The position numbers and the translations under genes were made by a program. A DNA stretch of 48,684 nucleotides from Octopus bimaculoides (taxonomy: Eukaryota), in contig NC_068987.1 in assembly GCF_001194135.2 (NCBI RefSeq), positions 108,226,309 through 108,274,992 on the forward strand, in the 5' to 3' direction. This document shows positions 3,028 through 22,994 of this stretch, one piece after another (the first letter of the stretch is position 1; every line of letters begins with the position of its first letter). The notes beneath the pieces are model-generated. The model searched no databases and was not told the origin of the DNA. It saw only the letters and a list, made by a program, of their open reading frames with translations.

Positions 3028-4199
3028 TAAAAAATTATTTTAGCGTTTGTTTTATTTATATAAAAATATTGATGCATTTTCATTGGTAATTATAAAAGTG
3101 AAATGAAAGTAATTTTTGATTTGAGATATTTGCCTTGCCTTAACTTTTGTTGTCCTCTTTAATATAGTAAATCTGCAATGGCTCCATAACTACCGTCTCA
3201 GCTACAACAATGAAGCCCTAGTAATGTGTTACAGCACTTAACTAGCGTAAGTAAGAGTTTAGATCACCTGTGAACTAAACCCCTATGTGACATTTCAATA
3301 AACATCTGTAAATGTACAACCATGCAGATTTCTGAGTCCCTCAATTTTTTTCTATGATATAACTCCTGTACATCACCTCCAAACCTTCCTATATATATAT
3401 ATATATATCAAATTGAAATCAGATGGTAACGATACATATAAAGAGATAACTTTAACTCGCTCAGACGAAGCAGGTCGCTTTAGATAAAAGCCAGGATTGA
3501 GAACTGAAGCAGAGAATCTGAATGTCTTAGACTGTGCAGTGATACACCTAAGAGATGGCGGGTACTCGGGCAATTCTACAATACTGTATCTAATTTTGGT
3601 TTCATTCATGCAAACTAGCAGCGTGTCACAGACTGAATGTCAGAGTTAGAGCACGATCACCTGCATATATTGCAAGCGGTGGAGCAAATTTTTTTGTCAC
3701 ACATTTGTTTGACCGTTGGTCACATATTTTTCTAAATATTATGAGCTGGGGCCGACTCTGCTCATATCTTTAGTGACCAGGTCTTCGTGACGAATATGAG
3801 CAAAAATAGCCCGAAACCCAGCTTGTCCCGCGATCCTGTCATCTGCTGTAATTTGATAATGGTTCGCTCAACTGTTAAGAATATATATGTGAAGAACACA
3901 CCTATGACCAGGTGGCGGAAGACCTGCTTTGCGATAAAAAAGTTGTAACATTGACAAGCCATATTTATTTGGTGACGAACTTACATACGCACATACACAC
4001 ACAATCAACACACACACATCACAAACACAGACAAACACACACATTTCTACATATATCTGATGTACATATCCTATCGAGCATAATTCTGTCGAATATTGTT
4101 ATACCTCGCCGTTCACAAAGCGCATCAGTTTGTCTTAGTTCTTCAAATGAAACTACCACTTTGGCTTGGCGAGCAGGCTGACATTCACTTGATGAGGCC

Positions 4200-4342
4200 T
4201 ACACATTTACTTCTGAGTGGGTTAGAAGAACGTGAAATAAAATGTCTTAGTGAAAAACACATAGCACCTTCTGCTCCGAATAAAATTCATTATGTAGCGA
4301 ACGTGATTGCAGTATTTTATCCAACCGTCTACGTGTCTTCAT
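4200..4342 (-). mobile_element. Degenerate tRNA-derived SINE
   Basis: Similar to 25420-25555 and 21990-22095 and to the heads at 8858 and 19306. Confidence 0.5.
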
Positions 4343-4427
4343 ACACACATACACACATACGGAAGTGGAGGGTGTGTGTGGGGGTTTGCATATATTTATA
4401 TATTTATAAATTTGTGACACGAGAACA

Positions 4428-4528
4428 GGTAACCACTGTTGGCTGAGGAGGAAGAATCGGCGCTTTCTAATTAAAATGTTCAGCTCGGTGAAACGTACGT
4501 TCGTATTCCTCAACTGATAATGGATGCC
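4428..4528 (+). ncRNA. Panhandle ncRNA family copy D
   Basis: TATATA 4397-4402, A-box TGGCTGAGGAGG, CGTTCGTATTCC. Stem 4428-4448/4508-4528 has 18/21 pairs (4 G-U). CTTTTGTTTT follows. Confidence 0.65.
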
Positions 4529-5115
4529 AGACTTTTGTTTTACTAATATAATGTCGAAGTTTATAACTGATAAATTTTCATCCAAAATCATGTAAATTCA
4601 TATGATTCTATCGTCTCGACATCTCTCTTAAAATAATTCGTAACTTAAAATACGTAAGCAAAATTTAGTATCAGATATTTTACAAATAAACAGATTTTAT
4701 GAACAATATTTGAAATTAAGTTTTAATATACAACCTCATACAGAAAAGATAAACACTAGCCCCAAGTCGAAGGATATAGAGATGTTACAGTCATTTGTAA
4801 TACTGCAGCCTTCCATCACATCCTGAAAAATTTCGCCAATTATATATTATTAATCATAATCAAAAGCTAATGACTGATCATTAAATCACTTAGTATCATA
4901 GGCAATTGAAATTCTCAGATAGTTATACCTGCATTCGATTTGTCATAACAAGTAAATTATTCTTTGTATTTTGTAGAATAATTATATTGCCATTTTAATT
5001 CTTTTGCAGTTGTTATTATTTTTTTATTTTTTTGTATCCCGAGCCATTGGCAATATTACGGTTTATAGTATTATTTTGAAAGGCGTCGCATCTACTGAGA
5101 AAAAATAATAATTCG

Positions 5116-5218
5116 GGTAACCATTATTGTAACAGGAATACGAACCTGCATCTCCGAGTATTAGACTCCTGAAACTACAAGGCTCTTCGCTCTTCCATGT
5201 TGACAAACAATAATTACC
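5116..5218 (-). ncRNA. Panhandle ncRNA family copy E
   Basis: Minus: GGTAATTATTGTTTGTCAACATGGAAGAGC...GGTTCGTATTCCTGTTACAATAATGGTTACC. T6 downstream (5100-5105). Upstream module present but TATA degenerate (GTATACG). Confidence 0.65.
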
Positions 5219-5699
5219 TGCTAGCGTTCACCAAAATAGAATACGTATACATATATGCATCCATACCTATGCATACACACACACACACTACATTACGTGT
5301 ATGTATTATTGCATGTAAACATACATATGATCAAACATCTATATATGTGTATGCGTGTGTGTTGACGATGCTGTGTGTATGGTGGGACTGGGAAGGGATT
5401 ATCCATTACGGATTGCTCTAACGGAACCAAACGGTCAACGCGGAAATCTATGTTCAAAAGATGGAACGACTTACCATGGCTATTCTGAAATATTTCGCGA
5501 TATTTATTTTGTTAATCATAATCAAAGGCTAATGAACGATCATTAAATCACTTATTATGATAGGCAACTGGTATTCTCAGAGGGTTCTACATGAATTCGA
5601 TTAGTCATAACAACTAAATTATTCTTCGTATTCTGTATCATAGTTATATTTTACTTTCTATTTCGCACATGTTAACAAAAAAAAAAAAAAAATACAACG

Positions 5700-5801
5700 G
5701 GTAGCCCTTATTGCTAACGGAATACGAACCTGTATTTCAGAGTATCAAACTCTGAAACTAAATGGCGTTTGTCTCTTCCATCTTGGCCAACAAGAGTTAC
5801 C
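5700..5801 (-). ncRNA. Panhandle ncRNA family copy F
   Basis: Paralogue of B. A-box TGGCCAAGATGG, 9-bp internal hairpin TTTCAGAGT/ACTCTGAAA, GGTTCGTATTCC, long T-run downstream (A-run 5677-5692), TATAATAAA upstream. Confidence 0.7.
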
Positions 5802-7198
5802 TGACATTGTTATGCAAAATAGTTTATTATAAATATATGTATTCATAACTATGCATACACTTACACACACAAACCCTCTGCATGACGTATATTACACATA
5901 TACATGTATATACATGTATATACATGTATATACATGTATATACATGCATGCAATATTCATGTAGGCATACATACGATCGCATTTATCTATATAAATATGT
6001 GTCAATTACATTTGATTGGGTATGCGGGCGTGTGTGTCCATCAGTGTTTGGATGTTGTATGGGAGTATGCATACGTAAATGTGTGTGTACATTGGTGTAT
6101 ATATGTATATATATATATATATATNNNNNNNNNNNNNNNNNNNNNNNNNNNNNNNNNNNNNNNNNNNNNNNNNNNNNNNNNNNNNNNNNNNNNNNNNNNN
6201 NNNNNNNNNNNNNNNNNNNNNNNNNNNNNNNNNNNNNNNNNNNNNNNNNNNNNNNNNNNNNNNNNNNNNNNNNNNNNNNNNNNNNNNNNNNNNNNNNNNN
6301 NNNNNNNNNNNNNNNNNNNNNNNNNNNNNNNNNNNNNNNNNNNNNNNNNNNNNNNNNNNNNNNNNNNNNNNNNNNNNNNNNNNNNNNNNNNNNNNNNNNN
6401 NNNNNNNNNNNNNNNNNNNNNNNNNNNNNNNNNNNNNNNNNNNNNNNNNNNNNNNNNNNNNNNNNNNNNNNNNNNNNNNNNNNNNNNNNNNNNNNNNNNN
6501 NNNNNNNNNNNNNNNNNNNNNNNNNNNNNNNNNNNNNNNNNNNNNNNNNNNNNNNNNNNNNNNNNNNNNNNNNNNNNNNNNNNNNNNNNNNNNNNNNNNN
6601 NNNNNNNNNNNNNNNNNNNNNNNNNNNNNNNNNNNNNNNNNNNNNNNNNNNNNNNNNNNNNNNNNNNNNNNNNNNNNNNNNNNNNNNNNNNNNNNNNNNN
6701 NNNNNNNNNNNNNNNNNNNNNNNNNNNNNNNNNNNNNNNNNNNNNNNNNNNNNNNNNNNNNNNNNNNNNNNNNNNNNNNNNNNNNNNNNNNNNNNNNNNN
6801 NNNNNNNNNNNNNNNNNNNNNNNNNNNNNNNNNNNNNNNNNNNNNNNNNNNNNNNNNNNNNNNNNNNATATATATATATATATATATATACAAATATTTT
6901 CAGATTTCTTCTATACATATATATATATGTATACACAAATATTTGCATATATATACGTATATATATATCTATATATATATATATATATCCATATACATAG
7001 ATAATAAAACGTACACAGGCGTATATATAATGATATGTGTGTACGTATATATGTATACATTAATATTATGCACACTTATATATGTTATCCAACAATAATT
7101 TCGGTGTAAGTGTACGTTTGTGCGTGTGTGCATGCTTGTGTGCGTGCAAGGTATGGATGCATATATTTATAAATATACTATTTTGTGATCCCAAACCG

Positions 7199-7298
7199 GT
7201 AATCATTGTTTGCTAAGGTAGCAGAGCTGAACGCATTCTTCTCAGAAAGTTTAGAACGCTAAAACGAATGTTCGAATTCCTCAGCAGATGATGCTTAC
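7199..7298 (+). ncRNA. Panhandle ncRNA family copy G
   Basis: TATAAA 7168-7173, TTGCTAAGGTAG, TGTTCGAATTCC, 18/20 terminal pairs, TTTATTTT downstream. Confidence 0.65.
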
Positions 7299-7757
7299 TA
7301 AAAATTTATTTTAGTTTTTGTTTTATTTATATAAAAATATTGATGCATTTTCTTTGAAAATTATAAAATTCAAATTAAAGTAATTTTTCGTCATTTGTTT
7401 TAGAATAATTAATAACTTAAAATAGGTGAGCAAAACTTAGAATCACATATCTCGCAAATGAATGAGGTCTTATAGTATTTCGTATACCCACAATATTCTG
7501 AAAGATTTCGTTAATTTTTTCATTATTAATAATAATTAAGGACAATAACCGAACATTAAAATTCTTAGTATCATAGGTAATCGATTTTCCCAGAGACTTC
7601 TACTTGCATTCGATTTGGAATACTAATTAAAGTATCCTTTCTATTTTGTATAATATTTACATAGTTTTGTATTTTGTATCACAGTTACACGTCGAATTGT
7701 AATATTACAAATTATAACACTAGTTTGAAAGAATTTGCATATACTAAAAGACAAATT

Positions 7758-7863
7758 CTGGCAACCATTATTTCTAAAGGGATACGAACTTACGTTGCAG
7801 AGTGTTAAACATACCAATTACAACGCCATTGTTTCTTCTTCCGTGGTAAACATTGTTTAACTG
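7758..7863 (-). ncRNA. Panhandle ncRNA family copy H (degenerate, paralogue of A2)
   Basis: Closely similar to 785-890. TATA mutated (TTTAGAAA), B-box-like AGTTCGTATCCC, weak terminal stem. Confidence 0.45.
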
Positions 7864-8228
7864 TTTGTCGTACATAAAATAGCAGATTTCTAAATATATG
7901 GACCCATAACAATGCACACAAACACAGCAACACACCCCTATACTCCGCACACGCACTGCATTGAATATGTTACTTTTGTATACGTACACAAAATTATACA
8001 TTAATGCATATATGCATACACGCATACGTACACACATATCTATAGACTTTGAGCTAGTCCACTCAGCTGTAAATGGGTATCTCTGTGGTGGAATAACACT
8101 CAGATTAGGAAAATGAGGTGCTGCTCGCCTATCCAGCCAGGTGGTGTGATACGTAAGCTTAAACAATGCAAAGCGCATCGTGTCTAACAATGTATAACAA
8201 CACCCGATAGTTTATTGGTAAATACCAC

Positions 8229-8284
<56 letters not shown>

Positions 8285-8797
8285 NNNNNNNNNNNNNNNN
8301 NNNNNNNNTATATATATATATATATATATATGCATAATAGTTACAGAGCCAACAAATATTAAGGCAAGGCAAACATCTCAAGTCACTGTTTTTGATTTGA
8401 GATGTTTGCCTTGCCTTAACGTTTGTTGCCCTCTTTAATATAGGAAATCTTTAATGGATCCATATCTAACGTCTCAGCTACAACAATGAAGCCCTAGTGA
8501 TCTGTTACAGCACTTATCTAGCGTAAGTAATAGTTTAGATGACCTGTGAACTAAACCCGTATGTGATATTTCAATAAACATCTGTAAATTTACAACCATC
8601 CAGATTTCTGAGTACCTTAATTAATTACCTTAAATAGGATATTTATGCATATATGCATTCATACCTATGCATACACACACACACACACTACATTACGTGT
8701 ATGCATTATTGCATGTAAACATACATAACATTACACTTTTATATATGTGTATGCGTGTGTGTTGACGCATTATGTATTATTAAGTATATATATTTGT

Positions 8798-8832
<35 letters not shown>

Positions 8833-8857
8833 CGCGTGTGTTTATGTGTTAACGTGT

Positions 8858-8962
8858 GAGGACATGTGGAGGAGCGGATGCGTTATTGCACACATGATCA
8901 CTATGTTATGGGTTCGATTCAGGACAAGGCAGCGCCCCGTGTACTTGAGTCAATCGCCAAAT
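8858..8962 (+). mobile_element. tRNA-derived SINE head (duplicated with the unit; copies 19306-19410 + and 16702-16807 -)
   Basis: GAGGACATGTGGAGGAGCGG...GGGTTCGATTCAGG B-box. The three copies share flanking sequence. Confidence 0.6.
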
Positions 8963-10060
8963 ATTATTTAGACAAACGACATTCGTCAGAGGAATTATAA
9001 ATAAATATTAGAAGGAATGGTATTTTCAAAAACAATCACGAGTGGCAACCTTATTATCAACCGTAAATGCAAATGAATAAATTATATACATCCAATATAA
9101 AGTATGTACATATATATATATATATATANNNNNNNNNNNNNNNNNNNNNNNNNNNNNNNNNNNNNNNNNNNNNNNNNNNNNNNNNNNNNNNNNNNNNNNN
9201 NNNNNNNNNNNNNNNNNNNNNNNNNNNNNNNNNNNNNNNNNNNNNNNNNNNNNNNNNNNNNNNNNNNNNNNNNNNNNNNNNNNNNNNNNNNNNNNNNNNN
9301 NNNNNNNNNNNNNNNNNNNNNNNNNNNNNNNNNNNNNNNNNNNNNNNNNNNNNNNNNNNNNNNNNNNNNNNNNNNNNNNNNNNNNNNNNNNNNNNNNNNN
9401 NNNNNNNNNNNNNNNNNNNNNNNNNNNNNNNNNNNNNNNNNNNNNNNNNNNNNNNNNNNNNNNNNNNNNNNNNNNNNNNNNNNNNNNNNNNNNNNNNNNN
9501 NNNNNNNNNNNNNNNNNNNNNNNNNNNNNNNNNNNNNNNNNNNNNNNNNNNNNNNNNNNNNNNNNNNNNNNNNNNNNNNNNNNNNNNNNNNNNNNNNNNN
9601 NNNNNNNNNNNNNNNNNNNNNNNNNNNNNNNNNNNNNNNNNNNNNNNNNNNNNNNNNNNNNNNNNNNNNNNNNNNNNNNNNNNNNNNNNNNNNNNNNNNN
9701 NNNNNNNNNNNNNNNNNNNNNNNNNNNNNNNNNNNNNNNNNNNNNNNNNNNNNNNNNNNNNNNNNNNNNNNNNNNNNNNNNNNNNNNNNNNNNNNNNNNN
9801 NNNNNNNNNNNNNNNNNNNNNNNNNNNNNNNNNNNNNNNNNNNNNNNNNNNNNNNNNNNNNNNNNNNNNNNNNNNNNNNNNNNNNNNNNNNNNNNNNNNN
9901 NNNNNNNNNNNNNNNNNNNNNNNNNNNNNNNNNNNNNNNNNNNNNNNNNNNNNNNNNNNNNNNNNNNNNNNNNNNNNNNNNNNNNNNNNNNNNNNNNNNN
10001 NNNNNNNNNNNNNNNNNNNNNNNNNNNNNNNNNNNNNNNNNNNNNNNNNNNNNNNNNNNN

Positions 10061-10566
10061 NTATGTATAAAAGAAAATAATATTCTTTCATTGTGACACA
10101 TTCTGTAGATTTTACTACACTCTACACCCATTGCAACGTATGTTTCTGAAAGTAGCGTTTTTCTGATTACAATCTTACCGTGAAATCCGGTTTTGTGCAG
10201 CTCCCGGCGAACACAATTTGTTGACATTTGTGTCTCGAAGTGGTCATCTACTCTGCAGCAGTTTTGAGATCTATAATTGTGTGGCTCTTTCGAACAATTC
10301 CCGTAAGTATTCAACGATCCCTATACTCTTTATTCTATCTTTTACTCTTTTACGTGTTCAGGCATTTGACTGCGGCCATGCTGGAACACCGGATTTAGTA
10401 GAGCAAATCGACCCTAAGACTAATTCTTTGTAAGCCTAGTACTTATTATATCGTTCTATTTTCCCGAACCGCTATGTTACGGGGACGTAAACACACCATC
10501 ATCGGATGTCAAGCGATGTTGGGTGTACAAACACAGACACACAAACATACACACACATACATATAC

Positions 10567-10623
<57 letters not shown>

Positions 10624-11092
10624 NNNNNNNNNNNNNNNNNNNNNNNNNNNNNNNNNNNNNNNNNNNNNNNNNNNNNNNNNNNNNNNNNNATATATGTGTG
10701 TGTGTGTGTATGTATATAAATACATATGCATATATACGACAGGCATTTTTTAGTTTCCGTCTACGAAATCCACTCACAAGGCTTTGGTCGGCCCGAGGCT
10801 ATAGTAGACGACACGTGCCCAAGGTGCTACGCAGTGGGAATGAACCCGAAACCATGTCGTTGGTAGGCAAGCTACTTACTACCCAGCCACTCCTGTGCCT
10901 ATCTGAATGTTTTGGTTCTTTTCCGGAGTTTTGCTTCTGCGCGGACGTTTTTCCCCCTTTCTCAAAGTCTGTCATTACCTTCGAGACAGTACCTCTGGAT
11001 TCACTAAACATTTCACCCATTTTCGTTACACAAGCGCCTGCCATACAACCACCAACAATTTGACCTCTTTGAAAGTCCGATGGATAAGTCAT
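10061..11092 (-). mobile_element. Tc1-family transposase pseudogene (N-terminal HTH part), split by a SINE
   Basis: MTYPSDFQRGQIVG...SRGTVSKVMTDFEKGGKTS...SGKEPKHSDR (11092-10898) continues after the SINE as DR*ILTGIVRKSH...VRRELHKTGFHGKIVIRKTLLS (10324-10090). These are typical Tc1 motifs. Confidence 0.8.
10325..10902 (-). mobile_element. tRNA-derived SINE, family 1 (resembles Octopus OK-type; name from memory)
   Basis: Head AGGAGTGGCTGGGTAGTAAG..GGTTTCGGGTTCATTCCC, central GCCTTGTGAGTGGATTT.GTAGACGGAAACT, internal (TA)n, tail GCATGGCCGCAGTCAAATG. Confidence 0.8.
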
Positions 11093-11573
11093 TTTAATGA
11101 ATTTTAATTACCTTTTTCTCATAGTATCTGAAAAAAAAGAGAAATTTTAGCAAAACCTATGAAGCAACAGTAATAATTAATCAAAAACATAAAAATAAAA
11201 AATGACCAGTTTTATAGATATTTCAGAATTATGATGCTATAATGCTAGGTGTTTCCATTATTTTTTCAAACCTCTATACAAATATAAGCATATATATAAT
11301 GCATGTATAAATATAAATATACATGCATATGCATACATCTATATACGTCGAAATCTTATCGTAAGGGTAGTAATTTTTGAAAGTTGTGTACTAATGAATT
11401 TAAGGAGATATTATTAAATAATAATAATACTTTGTTTAACTCCCTTGATGAACGGAAAATTAAATGTAGACATTTATATAAGTTTATATAATAAGTTTAG
11501 CTAAGTATGTATATATATATATGTGTGTGTGTGTTTGTGTGTGTGGTTGTGTATGTATATATATATACATATA

Positions 11574-11613
<40 letters not shown>

Positions 11614-13066
11614 CTAATTATAGTAGTGATAAATTGTAATCATTAAGTGCCTATTAATTACTACGAACATATTTTTAGTGAATATCATAAATTAATGATT
11701 AAATGATACTATGATTTTTATAAAATATATAATATAAATGTTTTAATTAATGTAATGTAAATATATTAATTTATAGTATTTTAGCTTCTTTGGTATATAT
11801 TATATAATTTATGTATTTTAATTTTAAGTTATTATACTCTAAAATTATTTAGATTTTAAAATTTCCAAGAAATGTTTATAATACAGTTAATTTTTTATTA
11901 TGATTAAAGCTAAAATACATTTTGATTTTATAAATAAAATTTACATACATGTTTATATATCTCTTTATTCTATTACTTTCTTTTACGCATTATTTTCACG
12001 CGACAATTAGTATAAGGTTTAAAATTTTAGTTTAAACTAAAGCTTCGATAAGATAAGTATTGCATTTATTTTCAGTAATATTGTTAAATGTTTTTTCTTT
12101 TATTTATTGGTAAAATAAATATTTTTATATAAATACGTTGATATTTATTGTTAGTCGATATATATATATNNNNNNNNNNNNNNNNNNNNNNNNNNNNNNN
12201 NNNNNNNNNNNNNNNNNNNNNNNNNNNNNNNNNNNNNNNNNNNNNNNNNNNNNNNNNNNNNNNNNNNNNNNNNNNNNNNNNNNNNNNNNNNNNNNNNNNN
12301 NNNNNNNNNNNNNNNNNNNNNNNNNNNNNNNNNNNNNNNNNNNNNNNNNNNNNNNNNNNNNNNNNNNNNNNNNNNNNNNNNNNNNNNNNNNNNNNNNNNN
12401 NNNNNNNNNNNNNNNNNNNNNNNNNNNNNNNNNNNNNNNNNNNNNNNNNNNNNNNNNNNNNNNNNNNNNNNNNNNNNNNNNNNNNNNNNNNNNNNNNNNN
12501 NNNNNNNNNNNNNNNNNNNNNNNNNNNNNNNNNNNNNNNNNNNNNNNNNNNNNNNNNNNNNNNNNNNNNNNNNNNNNNNNNNNNNNNNNNNNNNNNNNNN
12601 NNNNNNNNNNNNNNNNNNNNNNNNNNNNNNNNNNNNNNNNNNNNNNNNNNNNNNNNNNNNNNNNNNNNNNNNNNNNNNNNNNNNNNNNNNNNNNNNNNNN
12701 NNNNNNNNNNNNNNNNNNNNNNNNNNNNNNNNNNNNNNNNNNNNNNNNNNNNNNNNNNNNNNNNNNNNNNNNNNNNNNNNNNNNNNNNNNNNNNNNNNNN
12801 NNNNNNNNNNNNNNNNNNNNNNNNNNNNNNNNNNNNNNNNNNNNNNNNNNNNNNNNNNNNNNNNNNNNNNNNNNNNNNNNNNNNNNNNNNNNNNNNNNNN
12901 NNNNNNNNNNNNNNNNNNNNNNNNNNNNNNNNNNNNNNNNNNNNNNNNNNNNNNNNNNNNNNNNNNNNNNNNNNNNNNNNNNNNNNNNNNNNNNNNNNNN
13001 NNNNNNNNNNNNNNNNNNNNNNNNNNNNNNNNNNNNNNNNNNNNNNNNNNNNNNNNNNNNNNNNNN

Positions 13067-13099
<33 letters not shown>

Positions 13100-13371
13100 G
13101 TGCGTATTTGTATCTGAGACTGTATGTGGATGTATGTGTGTGTGTTTGTAAATACATGTACTTTGTTAATGTTGCAAAATTATCACAAAACTTTTACTCA
13201 GTCTTGCACATTCCCATTCAACGAACACTTGCGATTATAACTTCAGTACAAGAGATCACTCTCCTTTTGGTACTCGACTAGTATTTTTTCCAACTCGTTT
13301 TGCACTTCGTGGCACACCTGTTTTTAGGCGTGTTTGTTTACGTATGTATGTATGTATATGAATATAACCAC

Positions 13372-13424
<53 letters not shown>

Positions 13425-13895
13425 TATATGCATGTGTATATGTATATACACACAGTATATATTTCTATACATAAGTATANNNNNNNNNNNNNNNNNNNNN
13501 NNNNNNNNNNNNNNNNNNNNNNNNNNNNNNNNNNNNNNNNNNNNNNNNNNNNNNNNNNNNNNNNNNNNNNNNNNNNNNNNNNNNNNNNNNNNNNNNNNNN
13601 NNNNNNNNNNNNNNNNNNNNNNNNNNNNNNNNNNNNNNNNNNNNNNNNNNNNNNNNNNNNNNNNTATATATATATATACATATATATAAACACATATATA
13701 TACCGATAGATAGATAGGTACATTAATACATATGCGTATTCTCATGTATATATGCATGCACGCATTTATACATGCGTATATGAATGTATACATCTGTAAA
13801 ATATGACAGAGGAGTACTCGCGAGCGTGTCTGTGTGTGTGTCTGTCTGTCTGTGTGTTTGTCTGTGTTTGTGTGGGTGTATCTGTCTTTGCGTAC

Positions 13896-13930
13896 GTATG
13901 GATGCATATACTTATAAATTTACTATTTTG
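13896..13930 (+). promoter_or_regulatory. Representative upstream promoter module of the ncRNA family
   Basis: GTATGGATGCATATACTTATAAATTTACTATTTTG. Variants occur at a fixed distance upstream of nearly all copies, usually preceded by a (TG)n tract. Confidence 0.6.
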
Positions 13931-13943
13931 TGACAAGAAAATC

Positions 13944-14045
13944 GGTGGCCACTCTTTGCCAAGGTGGAAGAGACGTGAGCGTTTTTATTAGAGAGTTTAG
14001 TTCGCTGAAGCGAAGGTTCGTATTCCTTGAAAGAGAGTGGTCATC
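13944..14045 (+). ncRNA. Panhandle ncRNA family copy I
   Basis: TATAAA 13913-13918. GGTGGCCACTCTTTGCCAAGG pairs with CCTTGAAAGAGAGTGGTCATC (19/21, 3 G-U). A-box TTGCCAAGGTGG, GGTTCGTATTCC, TTTTGTTTT from 14050. Confidence 0.75.
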
Positions 14046-14469
14046 TGCATTTTGTTTTACCTATAAATAGATATGAAGTTAAAGATTATAATCCATGCAT
14101 TTTCGTCCACAATCACCCAAAAAAGTCAATTATATCTACTTTTTTTTAGATCTATTTGTTTTTAAATAATTGGTAATTTAAAATACGCCAGCAAAATTTA
14201 GGATCTGTTACTTCAGAAATGAACGCAATTTTCTGAGAAATATTTTAAATTTGCGTTTAAAATACAGCGTCATACAGAGAATATAAACATCAATGTCACC
14301 TAGAAGGTTATATAGACGCTACATAGTCGTTTTTAATATTACTGCTTCGCACACTATGCTCAATGATTTGGCCTATTTATAATATTGAAAGTAAATAAGG
14401 ATTATGAGAAAACATTAAAACTCTAAGTACAATAGGGAATCGATTTTCTCAGAGTTCTCACTTTAGCTT

Positions 14470-15240
14470 TAGTAATACAAGTGCGGTGGTGAAATCCTTC
14501 ACCGTCTTCCATTCATATATCAATGCATACCTCTCCGGTCTTTGCACCAAGTAATACAGTCGTAGCTCTCTCAGTCTCTCCTAGTAGCCCAGTCTTTCCA
14601 TTGATGCAAACTTTCTCATGTAACATAATTGATCTACCTCACGTTCTGCTGTTAATTTGTCACTGTAGGGTGTGAACAGTTGAGAGCAGTAGCCCAAGCA
14701 AGTGAGGAAAAATATCCTCCACAGAGCCTGTATAGTGTCAGGGTTCTTTGTTTTAAATGTCCTCAGAATCCACCCGAGTATTCTCTTGCACACTGCCACA
14801 ATCTTGGTGATATGCATGTGGAACGAGGCGGTTTTGCTAATATCAATCCTAATTTTATGCACTGTATATGAGACTGCGATTGCCACTTCTTTTAACCTAA
14901 ATTATCGCTGTTGCGGGTTCTGAGCACTAACTAGCTTCGATTTTGCCTACATGAAATTGCCCGTTGATTTCCTGAGCATATTTATACGTAGTATCTAGGT
15001 ATTTCAAGGGAAGATTAGCATCAGAAGATTCATTGACAGCTTGTAGAACTTATGCGTTGTCGGCATAGCTAGTAAGTGCGGCTGTCTGGACTAGGATAGT
15101 ATTTGTATGACATCTTAAATGTCAAGAGCCAGGAATGACAGCTAATGGATCCCTCTCCAAATAAACACAAAAAGAGATTGGTGTGCCTCGGGAAACCGTA
15201 CTGGGACCGCTGTTGTTCATGGTTCGTCTTTCAGACATCC
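14470..15240 (-). mobile_element. LINE reverse-transcriptase C-terminal fragment with an inverted segment (15105-15240)
   Basis: Minus: ALTSYADN (15056-15067, degenerate YADD), ILGWILRTFKTKN..LGYCSQLFTPY..ERLRELRLY..PERYALIY. Plus strand 15135-15240: TANGSLSK*TQKEIGVPRETVLGPLLF. Confidence 0.8.
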
Positions 15241-15774
15241 ATTATGGTTAGGATATATTATGCCATCCTTCATGTTTTTTTTTCTTTCGCCCTATTTATA
15301 TGAAAATATGAAATCAAGGTTTGTACTTGATGCATTTTCACCAAATGTCAAATAATGTCGAACAATTCTACATTTGTATTATTTGTCTCAAAATAATTAA
15401 TAACTTCTTTGTATTCTGTATAATAGTTCCATAGTGTTTTATTTTGTATCACAGTTATATAGCCGTTTCTAATAATGCAGCTGATGACACTATTTTGAAA
15501 GAAAATCGCAAATAGTTGATCCTTAACGCCTGTTCTTGTACTACACATGTAAATGCTTCTGTCTTTATCTTCAGGTTACACTTCCTCATCCATAGCCACT
15601 GGGATTATATATCCCCCTTGGCGTTCGCATCTCTTGCAAACTGGCCGTACATTTTTTCAACTTACCTGATCTTTTTTATTTATGGATGTTCTTTTCCCCT
15701 GTAAGTATTTCTTTAAATATTTGTCAATTTTTAAGCCGCCCCACTATTTCACATGCTTCAATAAAGGTTCCACG

Positions 15775-15776
<2 letters not shown>

Positions 15777-15829
<53 letters not shown>

Positions 15830-15851
15830 CATTGTTGTTGTTGTTGTTGTT
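15777..15851. repeat. (ATT)n/(GTT)n microsatellite
   Basis: Directly visible. Confidence 0.95.
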
Positions 15852-15951
15852 AGAGAATTGTTGAGCTGTAGCCAACTGATAAATCTTAATCACCTGGTTA
15901 ATCAATCACACAGACACTGACAGCACCTACACACACAGCACACAGACATAC

Positions 15952-15985
<34 letters not shown>

Positions 15986-16419
15986 CATATATACATATGT
16001 AGATTAGCTGAGTTAGAGATTAAAATTATTGTCTGAGAGATAAAATTACCCATTATTCTTCCGGTATATTACCTACGTTTAACCATGGGTATTCATAGGC
16101 AAGCATATTATGCCTATAAAGTATAGGCAAAAATAAAACAAGGATAAACATGAGTTTATCAGGAATCAAATTTTAAAGGAAAGAGAAAATGGAGAAGAAT
16201 TGTTGAAAATCAATTGACTTACATCAATTTTATTATTTATTAATACTGACACACAGACAGACAGACACACATACACACACATATAAGTACATAACTTATA
16301 TTGAATGTATATAATTTAATCATTTGCCTTTACGGCTTATAATTCGCTTACCACTCTTGATGTTATTTTCATAATACTATCCCTTCTAATATCTATTTAA
16401 AATTAGTTTCTCGCACGTC

Positions 16420-16497
16420 ATATGGCGTAGTGGTTAGTAATTTCCGACTTCGATTCCAGGCAATGGCCTGTATAATAATAATAATAATAATAATAAT

Positions 16498-16531
<34 letters not shown>

Positions 16532-16675
16532 TCGAAAAATACCTTAGGAATGAGACCACACGTTCGAAATTTCCCAAAGACACCTGATGAAGGCTGGAGG
16601 GTATATCAACCGAAACGTTGTGTTAACAACAAACAAGATGAGGACAAATATCCGTCAAATGTAAATAATGTTAAT
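16420..16675 (+). mobile_element. SINE-like element: truncated tRNA-like head, (AAT)n, Penelope-like 3' tail
   Basis: TGGCGTAGTGGTTAG..TTCGATTCCAGG, (AAT)n 16472-16529, then CCTGATGAAGGCTGG..CCGAAACGTTGTGTT and an AATGTAAATAATGT end. Confidence 0.65.
16579..16624 (+). ncRNA. Minimal type I hammerhead ribozyme motif (degenerate)
   Basis: Stem I GACAC/GTGTT, core CTGATGA 16584-16590, extra A, stem II GGCTGG/TCAACC (one mismatch), GAAA 16612-16615, palindromic ACGT stem III, GTT site. Confidence 0.55.
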
Positions 16676-17010
16676 TTCCCGTATTTCGTTTGTTTAAATA
16701 GTGTCTGGTGACTTACTCAAGTACACTGGGCGCTGCATTGTCCTGAATCGAACCCATAACATAGCGATCATGTGTGCAATAACTCATCCGCTCCTCCACG
16801 TGTCCTCACATATAAACAAATAAACACATGCACTCTCTCTCACACAGAGATAGACACACACATGTATAAATATTAATGCATAATGTGTTAACACACACGT
16901 ACACACACACATATATAGTTGAGATCAATAATTCATGCACGTAATGCAGTGTGTGCGTATAGGTATGGATGCATGTATGTATAAGTATTCTATTTTGGTG
17001 ATCGCTAGCA

Positions 17011-17053
17011 GGTAACTACTGTTTGCGAAAATGGACGAGAGAAGAGCCTTAGT
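17011..17053 (+). pseudogene. 3'-deleted copy J of the panhandle ncRNA family
   Basis: Upstream module GGTATGGATGCATGTATGTATAAG..CTATTTT and 5' arm GGTAACTACTGTTTGCGAAAATGG..GAAGAGCC are present, then the sequence joins directly to downstream flank. No B-box or 3' arm. Confidence 0.6.
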
Positions 17054-17236
17054 ATATGCGATATCTTTCAAAATAATATTATAAAGCGTAATATTACAAA
17101 TGACTTTGCAACTGTGATCCAAAAAATAAATTGAATGGACAATGTAACTATTATATAAAATACTAAGAATAATTTACTTGTTAAGAGAAATCCAATGCAA
17201 GTAGAACCCTCTGAGAGTTTAAATTGCTTACAATAT

Positions 17237-18412
17237 TGATGCGACCACCGAAAAACAAATTAATGTTATATCCCTATCTCCCGAGCTGGGTTTGAAACCG
17301 TATTCTGGTTGTTGAGGACAAGGGTATTCCTTTGTCCTGTCAACAAGCACAGCTATTTTTAGCGTAAGTGTGATCGATGACTCTTTCCGATCACCGAAAG
17401 TTCAGAAAAACAAGCTAAGGAATTGTACTGAACTGACCCAGCTTTGGAGGGAGTAAGGTAGCACTATCGAGCTACGGTATGTGTGATAAATACGACAGCG
17501 AGATTTGGGGGACGGAGGAATTGGCGCGAGCGGTCGGCCAGAGCAGTTGGCATCAAGCAGTTGGCGAAGCAGTTGCCGAGAGAGTTGGAGAGAGTTGGCG
17601 AGAGCAGTTGGCATCGAGGAGTTCGCGCGAGCGGTTGGCCTCGAGGAGTTGGTGGACGGCAGTTGGATGAAGAACGAGAGCCAGTGAAGATGAACAGTGA
17701 TAAGTCTGACAGAGAGAGGCCGAGAGAGAGAGAGAGAGAGAGCCTATGGTCAGCAGGTACGAGTCAGCAGAAATGCATAGAGTCTCAGAGAGAGAGGGAC
17801 AGAGAGAGGGAACTGTGCGGCAGGCAACAGATTATAGTAGTCAGTTGGTTAGTTCTTGTGATTATAGTGGGAGCTTTGAAAGAAAGGAAATTCTTGCGGT
17901 GAAGGTTTGTTTAAATATTCTTTAAAATGTACTTTGTCGTTACATGTTTTAAAAGAAGGAAAGAACTTCGTTAACTTTCGTTAACTGTGATGTTAACTGA
18001 AAAGAAAAGAAAAGAACTTTGATGTGACATGTTGTTCAAGGAAAAGAAAAACAACGAAGTGAAATAACTTTTAATTGACTTGATTACGAACTCTTGATTG
18101 TAAACTTTGATTATGTAATGATTGTAAACTTTTGATCATGTTGCATGCGCTATTGTTATATGTTAATGAATTATTGTTACGCAATGCTCTGTTTTGTATT
18201 GATGATATATTGTTTTGCTAAGAAGAAAAAGTTAGTTTCACTACGCAACGCATGGTCTCCGTGTCATTTCTTCCTCTTTTTGCCTGTTGTCTTCGTTACG
18301 TGCTCCGGCTGGGCTTAGTTGTGGCGAACATCCCGACTCACTGAGCGTCGACGTTCGCGCGCGCGAGAGTTTTCTCTTCGTTGAGGTGCTTCGCGTGCGG
18401 GTGTTCGTAACA
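17237..18412. mobile_element. Solo LTR (Ty3/Gypsy-like), 1176 bp
   Basis: Termini TGATGCG...CGTAACA, 4-bp TSD ATAT at 17233-17236 and 18413-18416. It interrupts a spacer that is contiguous in paralogous units. Confidence 0.7.
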
Positions 18413-18841
18413 ATATTAATTGATTTAATCTTCGGTCATTAGCCTTTGATTATGATTCATAATATAAATTTGGCTAAATTTTTCAGAATATTTTGGGAAA
18501 CCACAATTTTACAAATGACTGTAACGTCTTTACATCCTTTGACATGGCACTAGTATTTAGCTTTTCTGTATGAGGTTGTATATTAAAACTTAATTTAAAA
18601 TATTGTTCATAAAATCTGTTAAACGATTATTAAATCACTTAGTATCATAGACAATCGATATTCTCAGAGCGTTCTACCTGCATTCAATTTGTCATAACAA
18701 CTAAATTATTCTTTGTATTTTGTATAATAGTTACATTCTCCTTTAACTTTTTTTTTCTATGATGGTTGTATAGCTATTTGTAATATTGCGGTTTGGAATA
18801 TTATTTTGAAAGATTTCGCCCGTACTAAAAAAAAAAAATCT

Positions 18842-18943
18842 GGTAACCATTACTGCAACAGGAATACGAACCTGCATCTCCGAGTATTAAACTTTGGAAC
18901 TACAAGACACTTATCTTTTCCATCTTGGAAAACAATAGTTACC
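18842..18943 (-). ncRNA. Panhandle ncRNA family copy K
   Basis: Paralogue of E. GGTAACTATTGTTTTCCAAGATGG...GGTTCGTATTCCTGTTGCAGTAATGGTTACC, T12 downstream (18827-18838), TTTAAATA upstream. Confidence 0.7.
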
Positions 18944-18995
18944 TGCCAGCGTTCGGTAAAATAGTATATTTAAACATATATGCATTCATACATAT

Positions 18996-19038
<43 letters not shown>

Positions 19039-19551
19039 CGCACACACACACACACACAGAGACTCACATACACACACATAGACACAAACTGCATTACGTA
19101 TATTACTCATGTACATGCATGTATGCATTATTGCATGTAAGCATACATGCGATCTCATTTGTATATATGTTTGTATGTATGTATGTATGTATGTATTCAT
19201 GTATATGTGTGCGTGTGTGTGAACGCTTCATGTATTGATGTGTAAGCATGTGTGCGTGTGAGATAGAGAGAGAAAGACAGAGTGTGTGTTTATGCGTTTA
19301 TGTGGGAGGACACGTAGAGGAGCGTATAAGCTATAGCACACATGATCGCTATGTTATGGGTTCGATTCCGGAGAAGACTGCGCCTCTTGAGTAAATCACC
19401 AAACACTAATTAGACAAACGAAATTCGTGAAATTATTTATAAATAAATATTAGAAGGGATGGTATTATTAAAATACCATCACGAGTGGCAAACGAATTAT
19501 CAGCCGTAAAGGCAAATGAATAAAATATATACATTCAATATACGGTATGTA

Positions 19552-19596
<45 letters not shown>

Positions 19597-20689
19597 CAAA
19601 GAATATATATACATGTATACACACATATATGTACATACTTACATCTACATGTGTATATATATGCATATCAGGGTACAGGACGTTAGAACAATAAACTACA
19701 GACAACGGNNNNNNNNNNNNNNNNNNNNNNNNNNNNNNNNNNNNNNNNNNNNNNNNNNNNNNNNNNNNNNNNNNNNNNNNNNNNNNNNNNNNNNNNNNNN
19801 NNNNNNNNNNNNNNNNNNNNNNNNNNNNNNNNNNNNNNNNNNNNNNNNNNNNNNNNNNNNNNNNNNNNNNNNNNNNNNNNNNNNNNNNNNNNNNNNNNNN
19901 NNNNNNNNNNNNNNNNNNNNNNNNNNNNNNNNNNNNNNNNNNNNNNNNNNNNNNNNNNNNNNNNNNNNNNNNNNNNNNNNNNNNNNNNNNNNNNNNNNNN
20001 NNNNNNNNNNNNNNNNNNNNNNNNNNNNNNNNNNNNNNNNNNNNNNNNNNNNNNNNNNNNNNNNNNNNNNNNNNNNNNNNNNNNNNNNNNNNNNNNNNNN
20101 NNNNNNNNNNNNNNNNNNNNNNNNNNNNNNNNNNNNNNNNNNNNNNNNNNNNNNNNNNNNNNNNNNNNNNNNNNNNNNNNNNNNNNNNNNNNNNNNNNNN
20201 NNNNNNNNNNNNNNNNNNNNNNNNNNNNNNNNNNNNNNNNNNNNNNNNNNNNNNNNNNNNNNNNNNNNNNNNNNNNNNNNNNNNNNNNNNNNNNNNNNNN
20301 NNNNNNNNNNNNNNNNNNNNNNNNNNNNNNNNNNNNNNNNNNNNNNNNNNNNNNNNNNNNNNNNNNNNNNNNNNNNNNNNNNNNNNNNNNNNNNNNNNNN
20401 NNNNNNNNNNNNNNNNNNNNNNNNNNNNNNNNNNNNNNNNNNNNNNNNNNNNNNNNNNNNNNNNNNNNNNNNNNNNNNNNNNNNNNNNNNNNTCAAAGGA
20501 TTTACTTGACCTAAATTTATTCAGAACAATTTCAATCACTACTATTTCAATCACAACGGGTTACTTTTAGGTCTCTTGACCATTTAAAATCCGCTGGTAA
20601 CGAACTGCTTCGAATTTGTACCCATTAAATTTTATATTTTTTCCTGAGCCCATTCATAAATGGCATCTATACCTTTTCTTAGAAGACAA

Positions 20690-21130
20690 GCATCAGACGG
20701 TTCTTTCACTGCTTGTAAGAAGACAGGCAACCACTCTCCCAGTATTCCGCTTATGCCGAGTCTCTGCAGTTTGTAGCATTGTCAAATGCCTTTGCAAGTT
20801 TGAGATATATCACATCAAAATCTAAGCAAATCATTATTTTCTTTCAACATTCAGTCATAGTCTTTCAAATGCTGCGTCAGGCAGCTTCATCCTGAGCAAA
20901 GCCATGCTTGTTGTCAGGTAGTAATCAGTTTTTCTTGACGATGCGTTCCATGATATGGGAGGTTAGAGTGACAGCTCTATAATTTTTAACATCTACTCTG
21001 CTATCTTTATGGATAAGAAATATTATACCTTCCTTTAAAGTTTTTGAGGAAATTTCCCAGATGCGAAGAATCTCTTGAAGGAATCTAAAGTGGTGCTGCT
21101 AGAGCTCCTTTGCATTTCTTTAGAACGAAA
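20690..21130 (-). mobile_element. LINE RT N-terminal fragment (pseudogene)
   Basis: Minus frames give KEGIIFLIHKDSRVDVKNYRAVTLTSHIMERIVK..LLPDNKHGF..DFDVIYLKLAKAFD..LGISGILGEWL, i.e. degenerate RT domains 0-3. Confidence 0.75.
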
Positions 21131-21810
21131 GCTAGAAATCCATCATACACATATTACTCATGTATACGTACATAAGAATGCATTAATGCATGTATTCAAA
21201 CATATGTACACATACAATTTGCCATAACAATTAAACTATCCTTCCTATTTTGGATAATATTTCCATATCTTTTTTATTATTATTTTCGTATCACAGTTAC
21301 ATAGCCATTTCTATTATTACAGCTCATAACAATTTTTTGAAAGATTTTTGAGAGATTTTTTTCCAATGAAATATAAAATCTGGTGGGTGATATGTAGTGC
21401 ATATTAATATATTTAATTCTTTATTGCGGACCACTACAGTGTGATAGACTGAGTTTCAGAATGACAGCAGGAACACCAGTATAAATTGTAAGCAAGAGAA
21501 GCAAATATTTTGTCATGCATCTGTATGACCTATGGTCGCTTTCTTTTCTACATATGGCTCACTGGAGCGGACTCTGGCCATCTCCCTAGCGACTGGGTGT
21601 TTGTGGTGAATATGAGCAAATCTAGCTGGAAGCCTAGTTAGTTTCGCTATCACGTCGTCTGCCGAAAGGGGGTGGCGGTTCGCTAGCTTGCTTGCAATAT
21701 ATGCAGGGTGCAGAATGCACCTATAACCAGCTGGCAGAATATCTGCCTTGGTTTTAAAACAGTAATATCATTGAACAGCCATATTGATTTGGCGATTCAT
21801 TTTACTTAAT

Positions 21811-21850
<40 letters not shown>

Positions 21851-21869
21851 AATATTATGGTATAAACCA

Positions 21870-22095
21870 TAGGTCTATCGGATGTTGTTATGCATTGCTG
21901 GTGACAATGCGCATCGCATTGTTTTAGCATTTAAATGATGCTACAACGCTGGCTATGCGAGCAGCCTCACGTTCTCCTGCTGAGGCGTATCCATCTACAG
22001 CTGATTGGACCGGAAAGTGTGAAATGGGTTGTTTTACTGAAGAACACAAGGCGCGCCTGATCGGAGCCATGATGTAGCGATCGCTCTCTGAATAT
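21870..22095 (-). mobile_element. Degenerate SINE (3' part similar to 8055-8215)
   Basis: rc of GTCCA.TCAGCTGTA.ATGG.TA and AACAATGC..AGCGCAT tail; absent from the paralogous unit upstream of copy D. Confidence 0.5.
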
Positions 22096-22470
22096 ATCGT
22101 ATAGTCAATCACATGAGTTCACACGCACAGACAAACGCAAACAACACGTACGAACAGAAACGCTCACATATAAAAACACTTTCACACACCCAATAACATA
22201 TATAGAAATACATAATACACATATATACACACACACATATAGACAGACAAACAGACAGACAGACTGATAGATAGATAGATAGGTAGATAGATAGATAGAT
22301 AGATAGATAGCAAGAAAGATATGCGTGTGCGTATGTATATATGCATGCAAGCATTTATAAATACATATATGAAGGTATACATGTGTAAAATGTGAGGTGT
22401 GTGTATGTGTGTCTGTGCACACGTATGGATGCATATACTTATAAATTTACTATTTTGCGACAAGAGAACC

Positions 22471-22572
22471 GTTGACCATTGTTTGTCAAGGTAGAAGAGC
22501 CGAGAGCGTTCTAATTAGTGAGTTTAATTCGTTGAAACGAAGGTTCGTATTCCTTGATAGAGAGCGGTCAAC
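22471..22572 (+). ncRNA. Panhandle ncRNA family copy L
   Basis: TATAAA 22440-22445. GTTGACCATTGTTTGTCAAGG pairs with CCTTGATAGAGAGCGGTCAAC (19/21). GGTTCGTATTCC, TTTTGTTTT from 22577. Confidence 0.75.
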
Positions 22573-22994
22573 TAAATTTTGTTTTACCTATAAATACATA
22601 AGAAGTCAAAATGTATAATACATTCATTTTCATCCACTATCATAAAAAATCAAATAGATCTACTTTTTAGAATTTATTTGATTTCACATAATTAATAATT
22701 TAAAATACGCCAGCAAAATTTAGAATCAAATATTTCAGAAATGAACGGTGTTTTCTGAGAAATATTTTAAATTTGCGTTTAATATACAGCTTCATACAGA
22801 AAAGATAAGCATTAATGCCAAGTCGAAGGATATATAAATGCTACATAGCCATTTGTAATAATATAGCGTCGCACACAATTCCGAATGGTTTCGGCTTTTT
22901 CATTTTATTGAAAGTAGATAAAGGATTATAAGCAAACATTAAAATTCTTACTATCATAGGCAATCGATTTTTTCAGAGAGTTGTCCCACAAACT

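Follow-up and report, generated by a model that had tools for sequence, protein, structure and literature searches.

We found that the first 25 kb of the window (the whole stretch of 48,684 nucleotides analyzed here) holds a cluster of putative small-RNA genes, with 13 full copies and three remnants of one family, all located within 158-25274. Three 21-bp stems in this region (D, I, and L), described earlier in a sequence-only reading, are probably the closing helices of these clustered non-coding RNA genes, whose units resemble independent RNA polymerase III genes with hybrid promoters. The copies are diverged, and each RNA gene is ~110 bases long with RNA polymerase III-type signals. A family model built from the 13 copies scored its members at 91-107 bits and the rest of the window at no more than 24 bits. 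The units are listed below, with z referring to folding relative to dinucleotide shuffles.

158-332, + strand: c295p, subfamily a; RNA body 223-324; upstream block 158-222 with TATAAAT at -30; T4 located 5 bases past the stem; 99.7 bits; z -3.95
773-953, - strand: c806m, subfamily b, decayed; RNA body 787-888; three uncompensated changes in the 5' arm, distal promoter replaced by a (TA)n tract; z +0.81
1298-1484, - strand: c1337m, subfamily c; RNA body 1318-1419; 102 bits; z -2.38
2862-3041, + strand: c2999p, subfamily a; RNA body 2927-3028; 107 bits; z -4.73
4363-4536, + strand: D; RNA body 4428-4528; arms 4428-4448 and 4508-4528; 91.8 bits; z -2.74
5100-5283, - strand: c5135m, subfamily e; RNA body 5116-5218; upper stem register-shifted with single-base bulges; z -5.13
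5677-5866, - strand: c5719m, subfamily c; RNA body 5700-5801; T16 terminator; 105.5 bits; z -4.85
7133-7312, + strand: c7270p, subfamily a; RNA body 7198-7299; z -2.64
7746-7926, - strand: c7779m, subfamily b, decayed; RNA body 7760-7861; TATA box mutated to TAGAAAT; z +0.23
8641-8664, - strand: remnant, promoter block alone, RNA body absent
13879-14053, + strand: I; RNA body 13944-14045; arms 13944-13964 and 14025-14045; internal T5 at RNA bases 39-43; 106.9 bits; z -4.36
16963-17084, + strand: remnant, promoter and first ~40 RNA bases fused to the downstream flank of the family (internal deletion); 22.3 bits
18827-19008, - strand: c18861m, subfamily e; RNA body 18842-18943; T12 terminator; 100 bits; z -2.77
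22406-22580, + strand: L; RNA body 22471-22572; arms 22471-22491 and 22552-22572; 103.5 bits; z -5.43
23514-23598, - strand: remnant, truncated to promoter and 5' arm
25091-25274, - strand: c25127m, subfamily g; RNA body 25108-25209; T9 terminator; 95.5 bits; z -4.22

All evidence comes from 13 paralogues of ~7 lineages at one locus. Each copy, together with its promoter and T-run, resides in an unbroken block of the assembly at least 222 bases from the nearest run of N, so the assembly gaps bear on nothing but copy number, spacing, and relative orientation, leaving the stems unaffected. A block of 65 bases upstream of the RNA is conserved in all 13 copies (spanning about -65 to -22), and 12 of them have a TATA-like box at -30/-31 as its last element. 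Based on the position of this box, transcription would start at the first G of the 5' arm, and all copies but one (12 of 13) begin with this base. Every copy has a downstream run of 4-16 T, starting 4-15 bases past the 3' arm. The RNA bodies of 102 bases, with ends that pair over 14-27 bp, contain a box-A-like motif (TTTGCCAAGGTGG, RNA bases ~12-24) and an almost invariant box-B-like motif (GGTTCGTATTCC, RNA bases ~72-83); by inspection, one inserted base is needed for each to fit its consensus. Of all segments, box B evolves most slowly (0.92 changes per column vs. 2.24 in the centre), and both it and the loop adjoining box A vary less than the stem. Internal T-runs (T5 in I and c806m; T4 in c18861m) may cause an early polymerase III stop. 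Hybrid polymerase III promoters are known from selenocysteine tRNA, 7SL, and rodent 4.5SH/4.5SI genes (PMC10137851). In those genes, too, a TATA-like element around -30 is joined by box A and/or box B inside the gene; however, the RNA examined here forms no cloverleaf, is unrelated to 7SL, and has no Rfam match.

The predicted transcript would be about 105-125 bases long and fold as a panhandle, starting with a 14-bp terminal helix, followed by an irregular extension of 5-9 bp in a subfamily-specific register and a variable apical domain of ~55 bases. Its 5' end would be blunt and paired, and its 3' overhang would have ~8-23 bases and terminate in U. In other polymerase III RNAs, a paired 5' end with a short 3' overhang protects the ends and binds La, and the same geometry is the 'minihelix' recognized by exportin-5 and double-stranded-RNA-binding proteins. 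Adenovirus VA RNA, EBER, and nc886, which are minihelix RNAs associated with exportin-5, La, or double-stranded-RNA-binding proteins, also have a terminal helix of >14 bp, a paired 5' end, a short U-rich 3' overhang, and internal A/B boxes. However, these RNAs are viral or mammalian and have no sequence similarity to the family; any functional analogy is conjectural. Most likely, the panhandle RNA would be a scaffold for a small RNP, much like vault or Y RNAs, and specificity among paralogues would come from the variable apical domain.

Regarding the stems, D has 18 pairs (four G-U), and I and L have 19 pairs each (three G-U each); the earlier coordinates, arm sequences, and pair counts of all three were reproduced exactly. 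The same is true for the five double substitutions that separate D from L (position 2, G-C to U-A; position 4, A-U to G-C; position 14, G-U to U-A; position 17, U-A to C-G; and position 18, G-C to A-U) and for position 11, which is G-U in D and C-G in I. The earlier range of 1-4 G-U pairs holds for all but one copy, with an actual range of 1-5 in the ungapped 21-bp register. The five changes between D and L represent only two lineages, and positions 14, 17, and 18 belong to the upper stem, which is non-significant when tested alone. Among all 13 copies, 78.8% of the 21-bp helix is paired, and shifting the partner by 1-3 columns lowers this to 34-57%. Changes on both sides were found at 12 pairs, a number that none of 500 shuffles reached.

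A lack of covariation after accounting for phylogeny had been named beforehand as an outcome that speaks against selection on RNA structure. In our tree-aware null, the parsimony changes of each column were re-dealt onto the branches of a neighbor-joining tree. The lower 14 bp exceed this null (P ≤ 0.001), with 89.6% paired vs. 80.1 ± 2.9% (P = 0.001), double changes at eight pairs vs. 3.0 expected (reached by none of 2,000 simulations), and a covariation score of 0.384 vs. 0.210. Compensatory changes are distributed on at least four separate branches: one-step double changes occurred at positions 4, 5, 6, 8, 9, and 11, and position 2 changed stepwise from G-C through G-U to U-A, across four lineages. 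The upper 7 bp have no significant covariation in the fixed register under the same null (P about 0.3), and an all-against-all mutual information test singles out none of the individual stem pairs. The stem sequence varies among subfamilies with pairing retained, and the energy of own arms is -20.6 kcal/mol vs. -14.5 kcal/mol when arms are swapped in from other subfamilies. Eleven of the 13 copies, representing six lineages, are folded more stably than their dinucleotide shuffles (z from -2.4 to -5.4), and the two copies of subfamily b (c806m and c7779m) fold no better than shuffles.

One alternative is that the arms are a DNA-level feature, either terminal inverted repeats of a miniature element or a protein-bound palindrome in which both arms match one recognition sequence. 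The presence of two inverted 21-base arms around ~60 bases, in many copies and in both orientations, is consistent with this explanation, and Watson-Crick covariation by itself cannot separate DNA-level from RNA-level selection. However, the strands differ: pairing in the lower helix reaches 89.6% on the TATA/oligo-T strand, compared with 73.1% on the antisense strand (a gap of 16.5 points), with 35 G-U cells vs. five A-C cells, and 11 of 13 copies share one G-U pair that DNA would carry as a fixed mismatch. Moreover, target-site duplications are absent. The copies are homologous over the 65 upstream bases and, for several subfamilies, over hundreds of downstream bases as well; such homologous flanks indicate that the copies arose by segmental duplication rather than by insertion of a repeat unit. 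Taken together, a DNA-level origin of the arms is extremely improbable.

Equal stability on both strands was the other outcome named beforehand, and the sense fold is the more stable one in all 13 copies, with the better z-score in 11. In the minimum-energy folds, end-to-end helices comprise 244 pairs (43 G-U) on the sense strand vs. 172 (13 G-U) on the antisense strand. Approximately half of the 7.7 kcal/mol difference between strands is attributable to composition, because the shuffled G+U-rich sense strand also folds ~4 kcal/mol better. Counted as events in the lower 13 positions, the G-U excess is modest, with 10 changes to G-U vs. three to A-C (one-sided binomial P about 0.05). The lower-stem covariation, the preference for own arms, and the gap between sense and antisense thus support the earlier proposal of selection on RNA structure, not on a DNA inverted repeat, since the helix is maintained by compensatory and G-U-tolerant changes on the strand that carries the TATA box and T-run.

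Several other classes were considered and rejected. For a miniature inverted-repeat transposable element, no duplications are present at the arm ends, and the 65 upstream bases are conserved in all copies. For a tRNA or a tRNA-derived SINE, ARAGORN found no tRNA, and the flanks are homologous among copies. A microRNA precursor is a hairpin of 60-80 bases with a small terminal loop, and the arms here enclose ~60 bases. Matches to Rfam microRNA models (E ≤ 10 in 150-7950) were weak, located on microsatellites, and never on the copies.

Concerning identity, the family has no match to any RNA family catalogued in Rfam 15, and a search for orthologues found none. Vault RNAs, which are polymerase III transcripts with boxes A/B tied to the major vault protein particle, are described as 80-150 bases long, with conservation confined to boxes A/B, a T-run terminator, a panhandle, and clustered genes, and are often missed by homology methods (PMC8824774), such that the lack of an Rfam match is not decisive. 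The family agrees with this architecture, having internal A/B boxes together with upstream elements, a T-run (13/13), an end-paired panhandle of a compatible length, a variable centre, and clustered paralogues. However, boxes A and B are generic polymerase III elements, and box B of the family (GGTTCGTATTCC) has an extra base. The Rfam Vault model (RF00006), which takes in mollusc, annelid, and flatworm members (PMC8824774), had no match at the gathering score in the whole window, and none even at E ≤ 10 for copy L alone or for 150-7950 (nine copies). Furthermore, TTACTTCG, which immediately follows box A in the vault RNAs of lophotrochozoans and vertebrates and serves as a search key (PMC8824774), is missing after box A in every copy; a search for GGTTACTTCG with up to two mismatches gave 13 matches vs. 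22 expected by chance, none adjoining box A. Judging from these sequence features, the family is unlikely to be the vault RNA of this host. An identity as a homologue of Y RNAs or nematode stem-bulge RNAs (RF00019 and relatives), with candidate Ro60 binding via the terminal stem, appears highly improbable. The family has an upstream TATA at -30 (type-3 geometry), ~100 bases, a conserved end helix, a variable loop, an oligo-U tail, and clustered paralogues, all traits listed for Y RNAs (PMC4726728). Nevertheless, the Rfam Y_RNA and sbRNA models have no match in the same searches, and internal A/B boxes are not a known feature of Y RNA genes. The Ro60 site consists of a 7-bp lower-stem helix in which one C bulges out across from a 3-base bulge; in Y RNAs, the upper stem further contains a paired A/GUG-CAC/U motif, and the loop contains UUAUC (PMC4726728). 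In contrast, the lower stem here is a continuous 14-bp helix that aligns without gaps, with neither bulge conserved; the paired GUG-CAC motif occurs in no copy, and UUAUC (TTATC) occurs only in the decayed c806m. A lineage-specific polymerase III panhandle class that is neither vault nor Y RNA, with genes diverging ~2x as fast as flanks and a terminal helix kept by compensation, is a tentative possibility.

The divergence patterns bear on two further explanations. Between distant subfamilies, only the promoter and RNA can still be aligned, and the flanks are saturated. In recent duplicates, the genes are conserved no better than the flanks, and some pairs diverge ~2x faster. This equal or higher divergence of the genes, the three remnants, the decayed subfamily b, the internal T5 in I and c806m, and the disruptive nature of the latest stem changes (e.g., G-A in c295p and U-C in c7270p) may suggest that the cluster is mostly a graveyard, with one or a few once-functional genes now drifting neutrally and covariation left from past selection. 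However, the 11 well-folding copies of six lineages retain TATA, box B, and terminator in register, the promoter and RNA outlast the flanks between subfamilies, and fast gene divergence is also expected from transcription-associated mutation, as at active tRNA genes. We therefore consider a graveyard quite unlikely. The other explanation is that the RNA mainly serves as a small-RNA precursor, from which the ~21-bp terminal duplex would be excised, with the stem sequence as the diversifying functional part. Small-RNA fragments have been reported from vault and Y RNAs, the stem length approximates that of a small-RNA duplex, and the stem sequences vary by subfamily with pairing kept in genes that outpace their flanks. 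However, Dicer substrates typically lack a large apical domain or a blunt, triphosphorylated 5' end, such that the 60-base apical domain and 5' end predicted here would be atypical, and conservation of box B and the loop adjoining box A exceeds that of the stem. A role mainly as a precursor is thus very unlikely.

If transcribed, these polymerase III panhandle genes would represent a small-RNA gene family new to Rfam 15 and a candidate vault-like or Y-like RNA for a lineage where homology searches fail. Separately, a collection of 5.8 billion protein sequences contains almost no relatives of the repeats of the source eukaryote. A fast-diverging, lineage-specific class, if true, may indicate either very high germline transcription, with transcription-driven mutation as at tRNA genes, or diversifying selection; in the latter case, the targets would be the stem and apical sequences within a guide-like or decoy-like RNA family. 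Genes that outpace their flanks may mark transcription-associated mutation at loci other than tRNA genes. The graded divergence of the 13 paralogues provides a built-in comparison that points to box B, the lower helix, and the loop adjoining box A as the key parts of the RNA.

Our preferred reading is that the window contains a cluster of predicted, unannotated small-RNA genes of the polymerase III type, in which the closing helix appears to be kept paired at the RNA level. The family was located by a nearly invariant motif, GTTCGTATTCC, and an upstream block, GTATGGATGCATATAYTTATAAAT. We built a covariance model (R1) from the alignment (A2) of the 13 copies and ran it unfiltered over the whole window. 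These copies scored 91-107 bits and all else scored 24 bits or less. The sub-threshold matches were either antisense strands of true copies or three remnants:

8641-8664, minus strand, promoter alone, without an RNA body
16963-17084, plus strand, copy with an internal deletion
23514-23598, minus strand, truncated copy

All family members lie within 158-25274, and none was found in the remaining 23 kb of the window. A neighbor-joining tree of the 13 copies has about seven lineages (D, I, and L were named in the sequence-only reading; other names give position and strand, with p for plus and m for minus):

lineage a: c295p, c2999p, and c7270p
lineage b: c806m and c7779m
lineage c: c1337m and c5719m
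lineage e: c5135m and c18861m
lineage I/L: I and L, grouped
lineage D: D, a single copy
lineage c25127m: c25127m, a single copy

The copies appear to have arisen through segmental duplication rather than insertion, because the 65 bases upstream of the gene are homologous in all 13, hundreds of flanking bases can be aligned both within and between several subfamilies, and no target-site duplications were found at the copies. N runs are contained in or touch none of the copies. The nearest assembly gap to any copy is 279 bases away, upstream of I, and the smallest clearance (222 bases) is to the left end of the window. Stems, promoters, and terminators are unaffected by the gaps, which make it uncertain how many copies there are, how they are spaced, and how they are oriented to one another; more family copies could be hidden inside them. 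(TA)n and (TG)n microsatellites are abundant, and the sequenced stretches have a G+C content of ~36%. Many gaps adjoin (TA)n tracts (e.g., at 1765, 6125, 9129, 12170, 27853, and 42445), and (TG)n tracts lie directly upstream of most family copies.

A TATA-like box is located at -31/-30 from the first paired base in 12 of the 13 copies, and D carries overlapping TATA-like sequence at this position. Twelve copies have G as their first base, and all 13 have a run of 4-16 T that starts 4-15 bases past the last paired base. Two internal segments were recognized by inspection: TTTGCCAAGGTGG (RNA bases ~12-24), which we take to be box A-like, and GGTTCGTATTCC (RNA bases ~72-83), presumably box B-like, each with a one-base insertion compared to the consensus. 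Together, the upstream TATA box and internal boxes have the geometry of a putative hybrid promoter, whose polymerase we infer to be polymerase III. Ranking the segments by parsimony changes per column gave the following order of constraint:

box B, 0.92 changes per column
lower stem (first 14 bp of the 21-bp terminal helix), 1.4-1.6
loop next to box A, 1.4
upper stem (remaining 7 bp), 2.0-2.7
centre, 2.2

Individual copies deviate from this layout. Internal T5 runs are present in I (13982-13986) and c806m (about 834-838), and a T4 run in c18861m (18929-18932); such runs could stop polymerase III transcription early. The TATA box of c7779m carries a mutation, and a (TA)n tract stands in place of the distal promoter of c806m.

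The terminal stems of D (4428-4448/4508-4528; 18 pairs, 4 G-U), I (13944-13964/14025-14045; 19 pairs, 3 G-U), and L (22471-22491/22552-22572; 19 pairs, 3 G-U) are exactly as the sequence-only reading described them, and all substitutions that it listed were found in the sequence. Its further claim that these stems covary was borne out for the lower stem after allowing for phylogeny. The 21-bp helix is 78.8% paired, compared with 34-57% after a 1-3 column shift of the partner, and has 12 double-change pairs, a number equalled in 0 of 500 shuffles. For the lower 14 bp, the pairing is 89.6% (30-65% with a slid partner), and the 8 double-change pairs were equalled in 1 of 500 shuffles. In the tree-aware null, the root state and parsimony change number of each column were fixed and the changes were re-dealt by branch length (2000 replicates). 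Against this null, the paired fraction of the lower 14 bp was significant (P = 0.001), and its double-change pairs and covariation score were each equalled in 0/2000. The test gave P <= 0.0005 for all 21 bp and P of about 0.3 for the upper 7 bp alone. By parsimony, six one-step, two-sided changes kept the pair in the lower 13 positions:

position 4, A-U to G-C, in I/L
position 5, A-U to G-C, in c25127m
position 6, C-G to U-A, in lineage a
position 8, A-U to C-G, in lineage c
position 9, U-A to C-G, in I/L
position 11, G-U to C-G, in I/L

Together with a stepwise change at position 2 (G-C to G-U to U-A), the pair-keeping changes are spread across four lineages. The same reconstruction includes about ten disruptive events, and the latest stem changes are disruptive. 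In an alignment-free duplex test, the 5' arm of each copy paired at a mean of -20.6 kcal/mol with its own 3' arm, vs -14.5 kcal/mol with 3' arms taken from other subfamilies; lineage b is the exception, with a decayed 5' arm and a 3' arm still near the consensus. In an all-against-all, background-corrected mutual information ranking, which is dominated by subfamily signal and uninformative at n = 13, the stem pairs do not stand out individually (best ranks 26, 35, and 101 of 5253). With 13 paralogues in seven lineages, the power is too low for single pairs to reach significance. The evidence for covariation is collective and presupposes the proposed helix.

The sequence-only reading had also described strand-biased G-U pairs and attributed the stems to selection on RNA rather than on DNA repeats. 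Scoring these 14 lower-stem columns in the reverse complement as well gave 73.1% pairing for the antisense strand vs 89.6% for the sense strand, namely that of the TATA box and T-run, with covariation scores of 0.207 vs 0.384. One stem position is unpaired on the antisense strand in 12 of the 13 copies. The lower-stem cells contain 35 G-U vs 5 A-C, and position 11 is G-U in 11 copies. In terms of events, the bias is modest (lower stem, 10 vs 3; overall, 11 vs 5). Over all 21 positions there are 38 G-U and 18 A-C, and in the ungapped upper 7 A-C exceeds G-U (13 vs 3), an excess that is partly a register artefact of lineages c and e. The end-to-end helices of the minimum-energy folds total 244 pairs (43 G-U) in sense and 172 pairs (13 G-U) in antisense. 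As for folding stability, the two strands are unequal: the sense strand folds more stably in 13/13 copies and 7/7 lineage means, by 7.7 kcal/mol on average. Shuffled sense strands likewise have an advantage of about 4 kcal/mol over shuffled antisense strands, and therefore roughly half of the strand difference is due to composition. The z-scores are still better for the sense strand in 11 of the 13 copies (means of about -3.2 vs -2.3). The better-pairing strand is also the one set independently by the TATA box and T-run. Taken together, these strand results support selection acting on RNA.

Among the 13 bodies, 11 fold better than dinucleotide shuffles (z of -2.4 to -5.4). At minimum energy, the RNA folds into a panhandle closed by its two ends; this fold has been lost in lineage b (z of +0.8 and +0.2). 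No gaps are needed to align the lower 14 bp of all copies. In lineages a, D, I/L, and c25127m, the upper stem continues in register to CAAGG/CCTTG-type pairs. A single 21-bp register shared by every copy was rejected in the upper 7 bp, because lineages c and e are displaced there by 1-3 bases, with single-base bulges; in these, GGAA is paired with UUCC of box B. The apical ~55 bases form hairpins that differ by subfamily. A hairpin around box B resembling the T-arm of a tRNA was rejected as well; by inspection, its 4-bp version is confined to I, L, c5135m, and c18861m, among which one pair changes from A-U to C-G. The predicted inner helix between GAG (columns 29-31) and GUUC of box B has one-sided variation only.

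Rfam 15 gave no match on any copy in the window at the gathering score, and none at E <= 10 for L alone or on the nine copies in 150-7950; the sole matches at relaxed score were microsatellite-type microRNA noise, off the copies. ARAGORN found no tRNA. Metagenome contigs scanned with the RNA-body and promoter patterns yielded no match and no orthologues. In the full-text literature, three family-specific strings were absent among the matches listed, and those shown were of the generic 12-mer AAGGTGGAAGAG. The vault RNA covariance model includes mollusc, annelid, and flatworm members (PMC8824774). The family agrees in architecture with the published description of vault RNAs (PMC8824774); however, it is not matched by that model, and the vault TTACTTCG after box A is absent from the copies. 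Similarly, its promoter type, size, and terminal stem agree with those of Y RNAs and stem-bulge RNAs (PMC4726728), but it lacks the bulged-C Ro60 site, the paired GUG-CAC motif, and the conserved UUAUC. By analogy, the family would work like these panhandle polymerase III RNAs, but on these tests it does not qualify as a member of the vault or Y family. The predicted RNA may be vault-like, may be Y-like, or may represent a lineage-specific family.

In the duplication 1-950/6976-7925, the spacer is about 94% identical and the two genes are 86-88% identical (26 mismatches in 204 gene bases vs about 28 in 448 spacer bases). Between lineages b and e (522-953 vs 4820-5283), the RNA is 59-63% identical and the block 130-300 bases downstream is 77% identical. 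The genes thus diverge faster than their flanks in these comparisons; this could result from transcription-driven mutation, from diversifying selection, or from the downstream block being constrained. The block, ~170 bases long, lies 130-300 bases 3' of five minus-strand copies:

522-690
4820-4988
5482-5650
7495-7663
18569-18737

Its identity between subfamilies (69-83%) exceeds that of the preceding spacer. A second RNA gene in this block is unsupported, with a consensus fold of only -5.5 kcal/mol.

Other repeats were also observed in the window. Two non-microsatellite long hairpins, at 1022-1124 (46-base arms, 83% complementary) and 8350-8428 (36-base arms, 92%), share sequence with a 234-base repeat (3113-3346/8389-8622), and together these may represent a miniature transposable element. 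A Tc1/mariner-type transposase remnant at about 10098-11092 (minus strand) has a weak Pfam HTH_Tnp_Tc3_2 match and two homologues only among 5.8 billion proteins. An interspersed repeat (10357-10591/25585-25819; copies 88% identical), which may be a SINE, is the source of the recurring ...FSFRL.NPLT.LWSARGYSRRH... reading frames.
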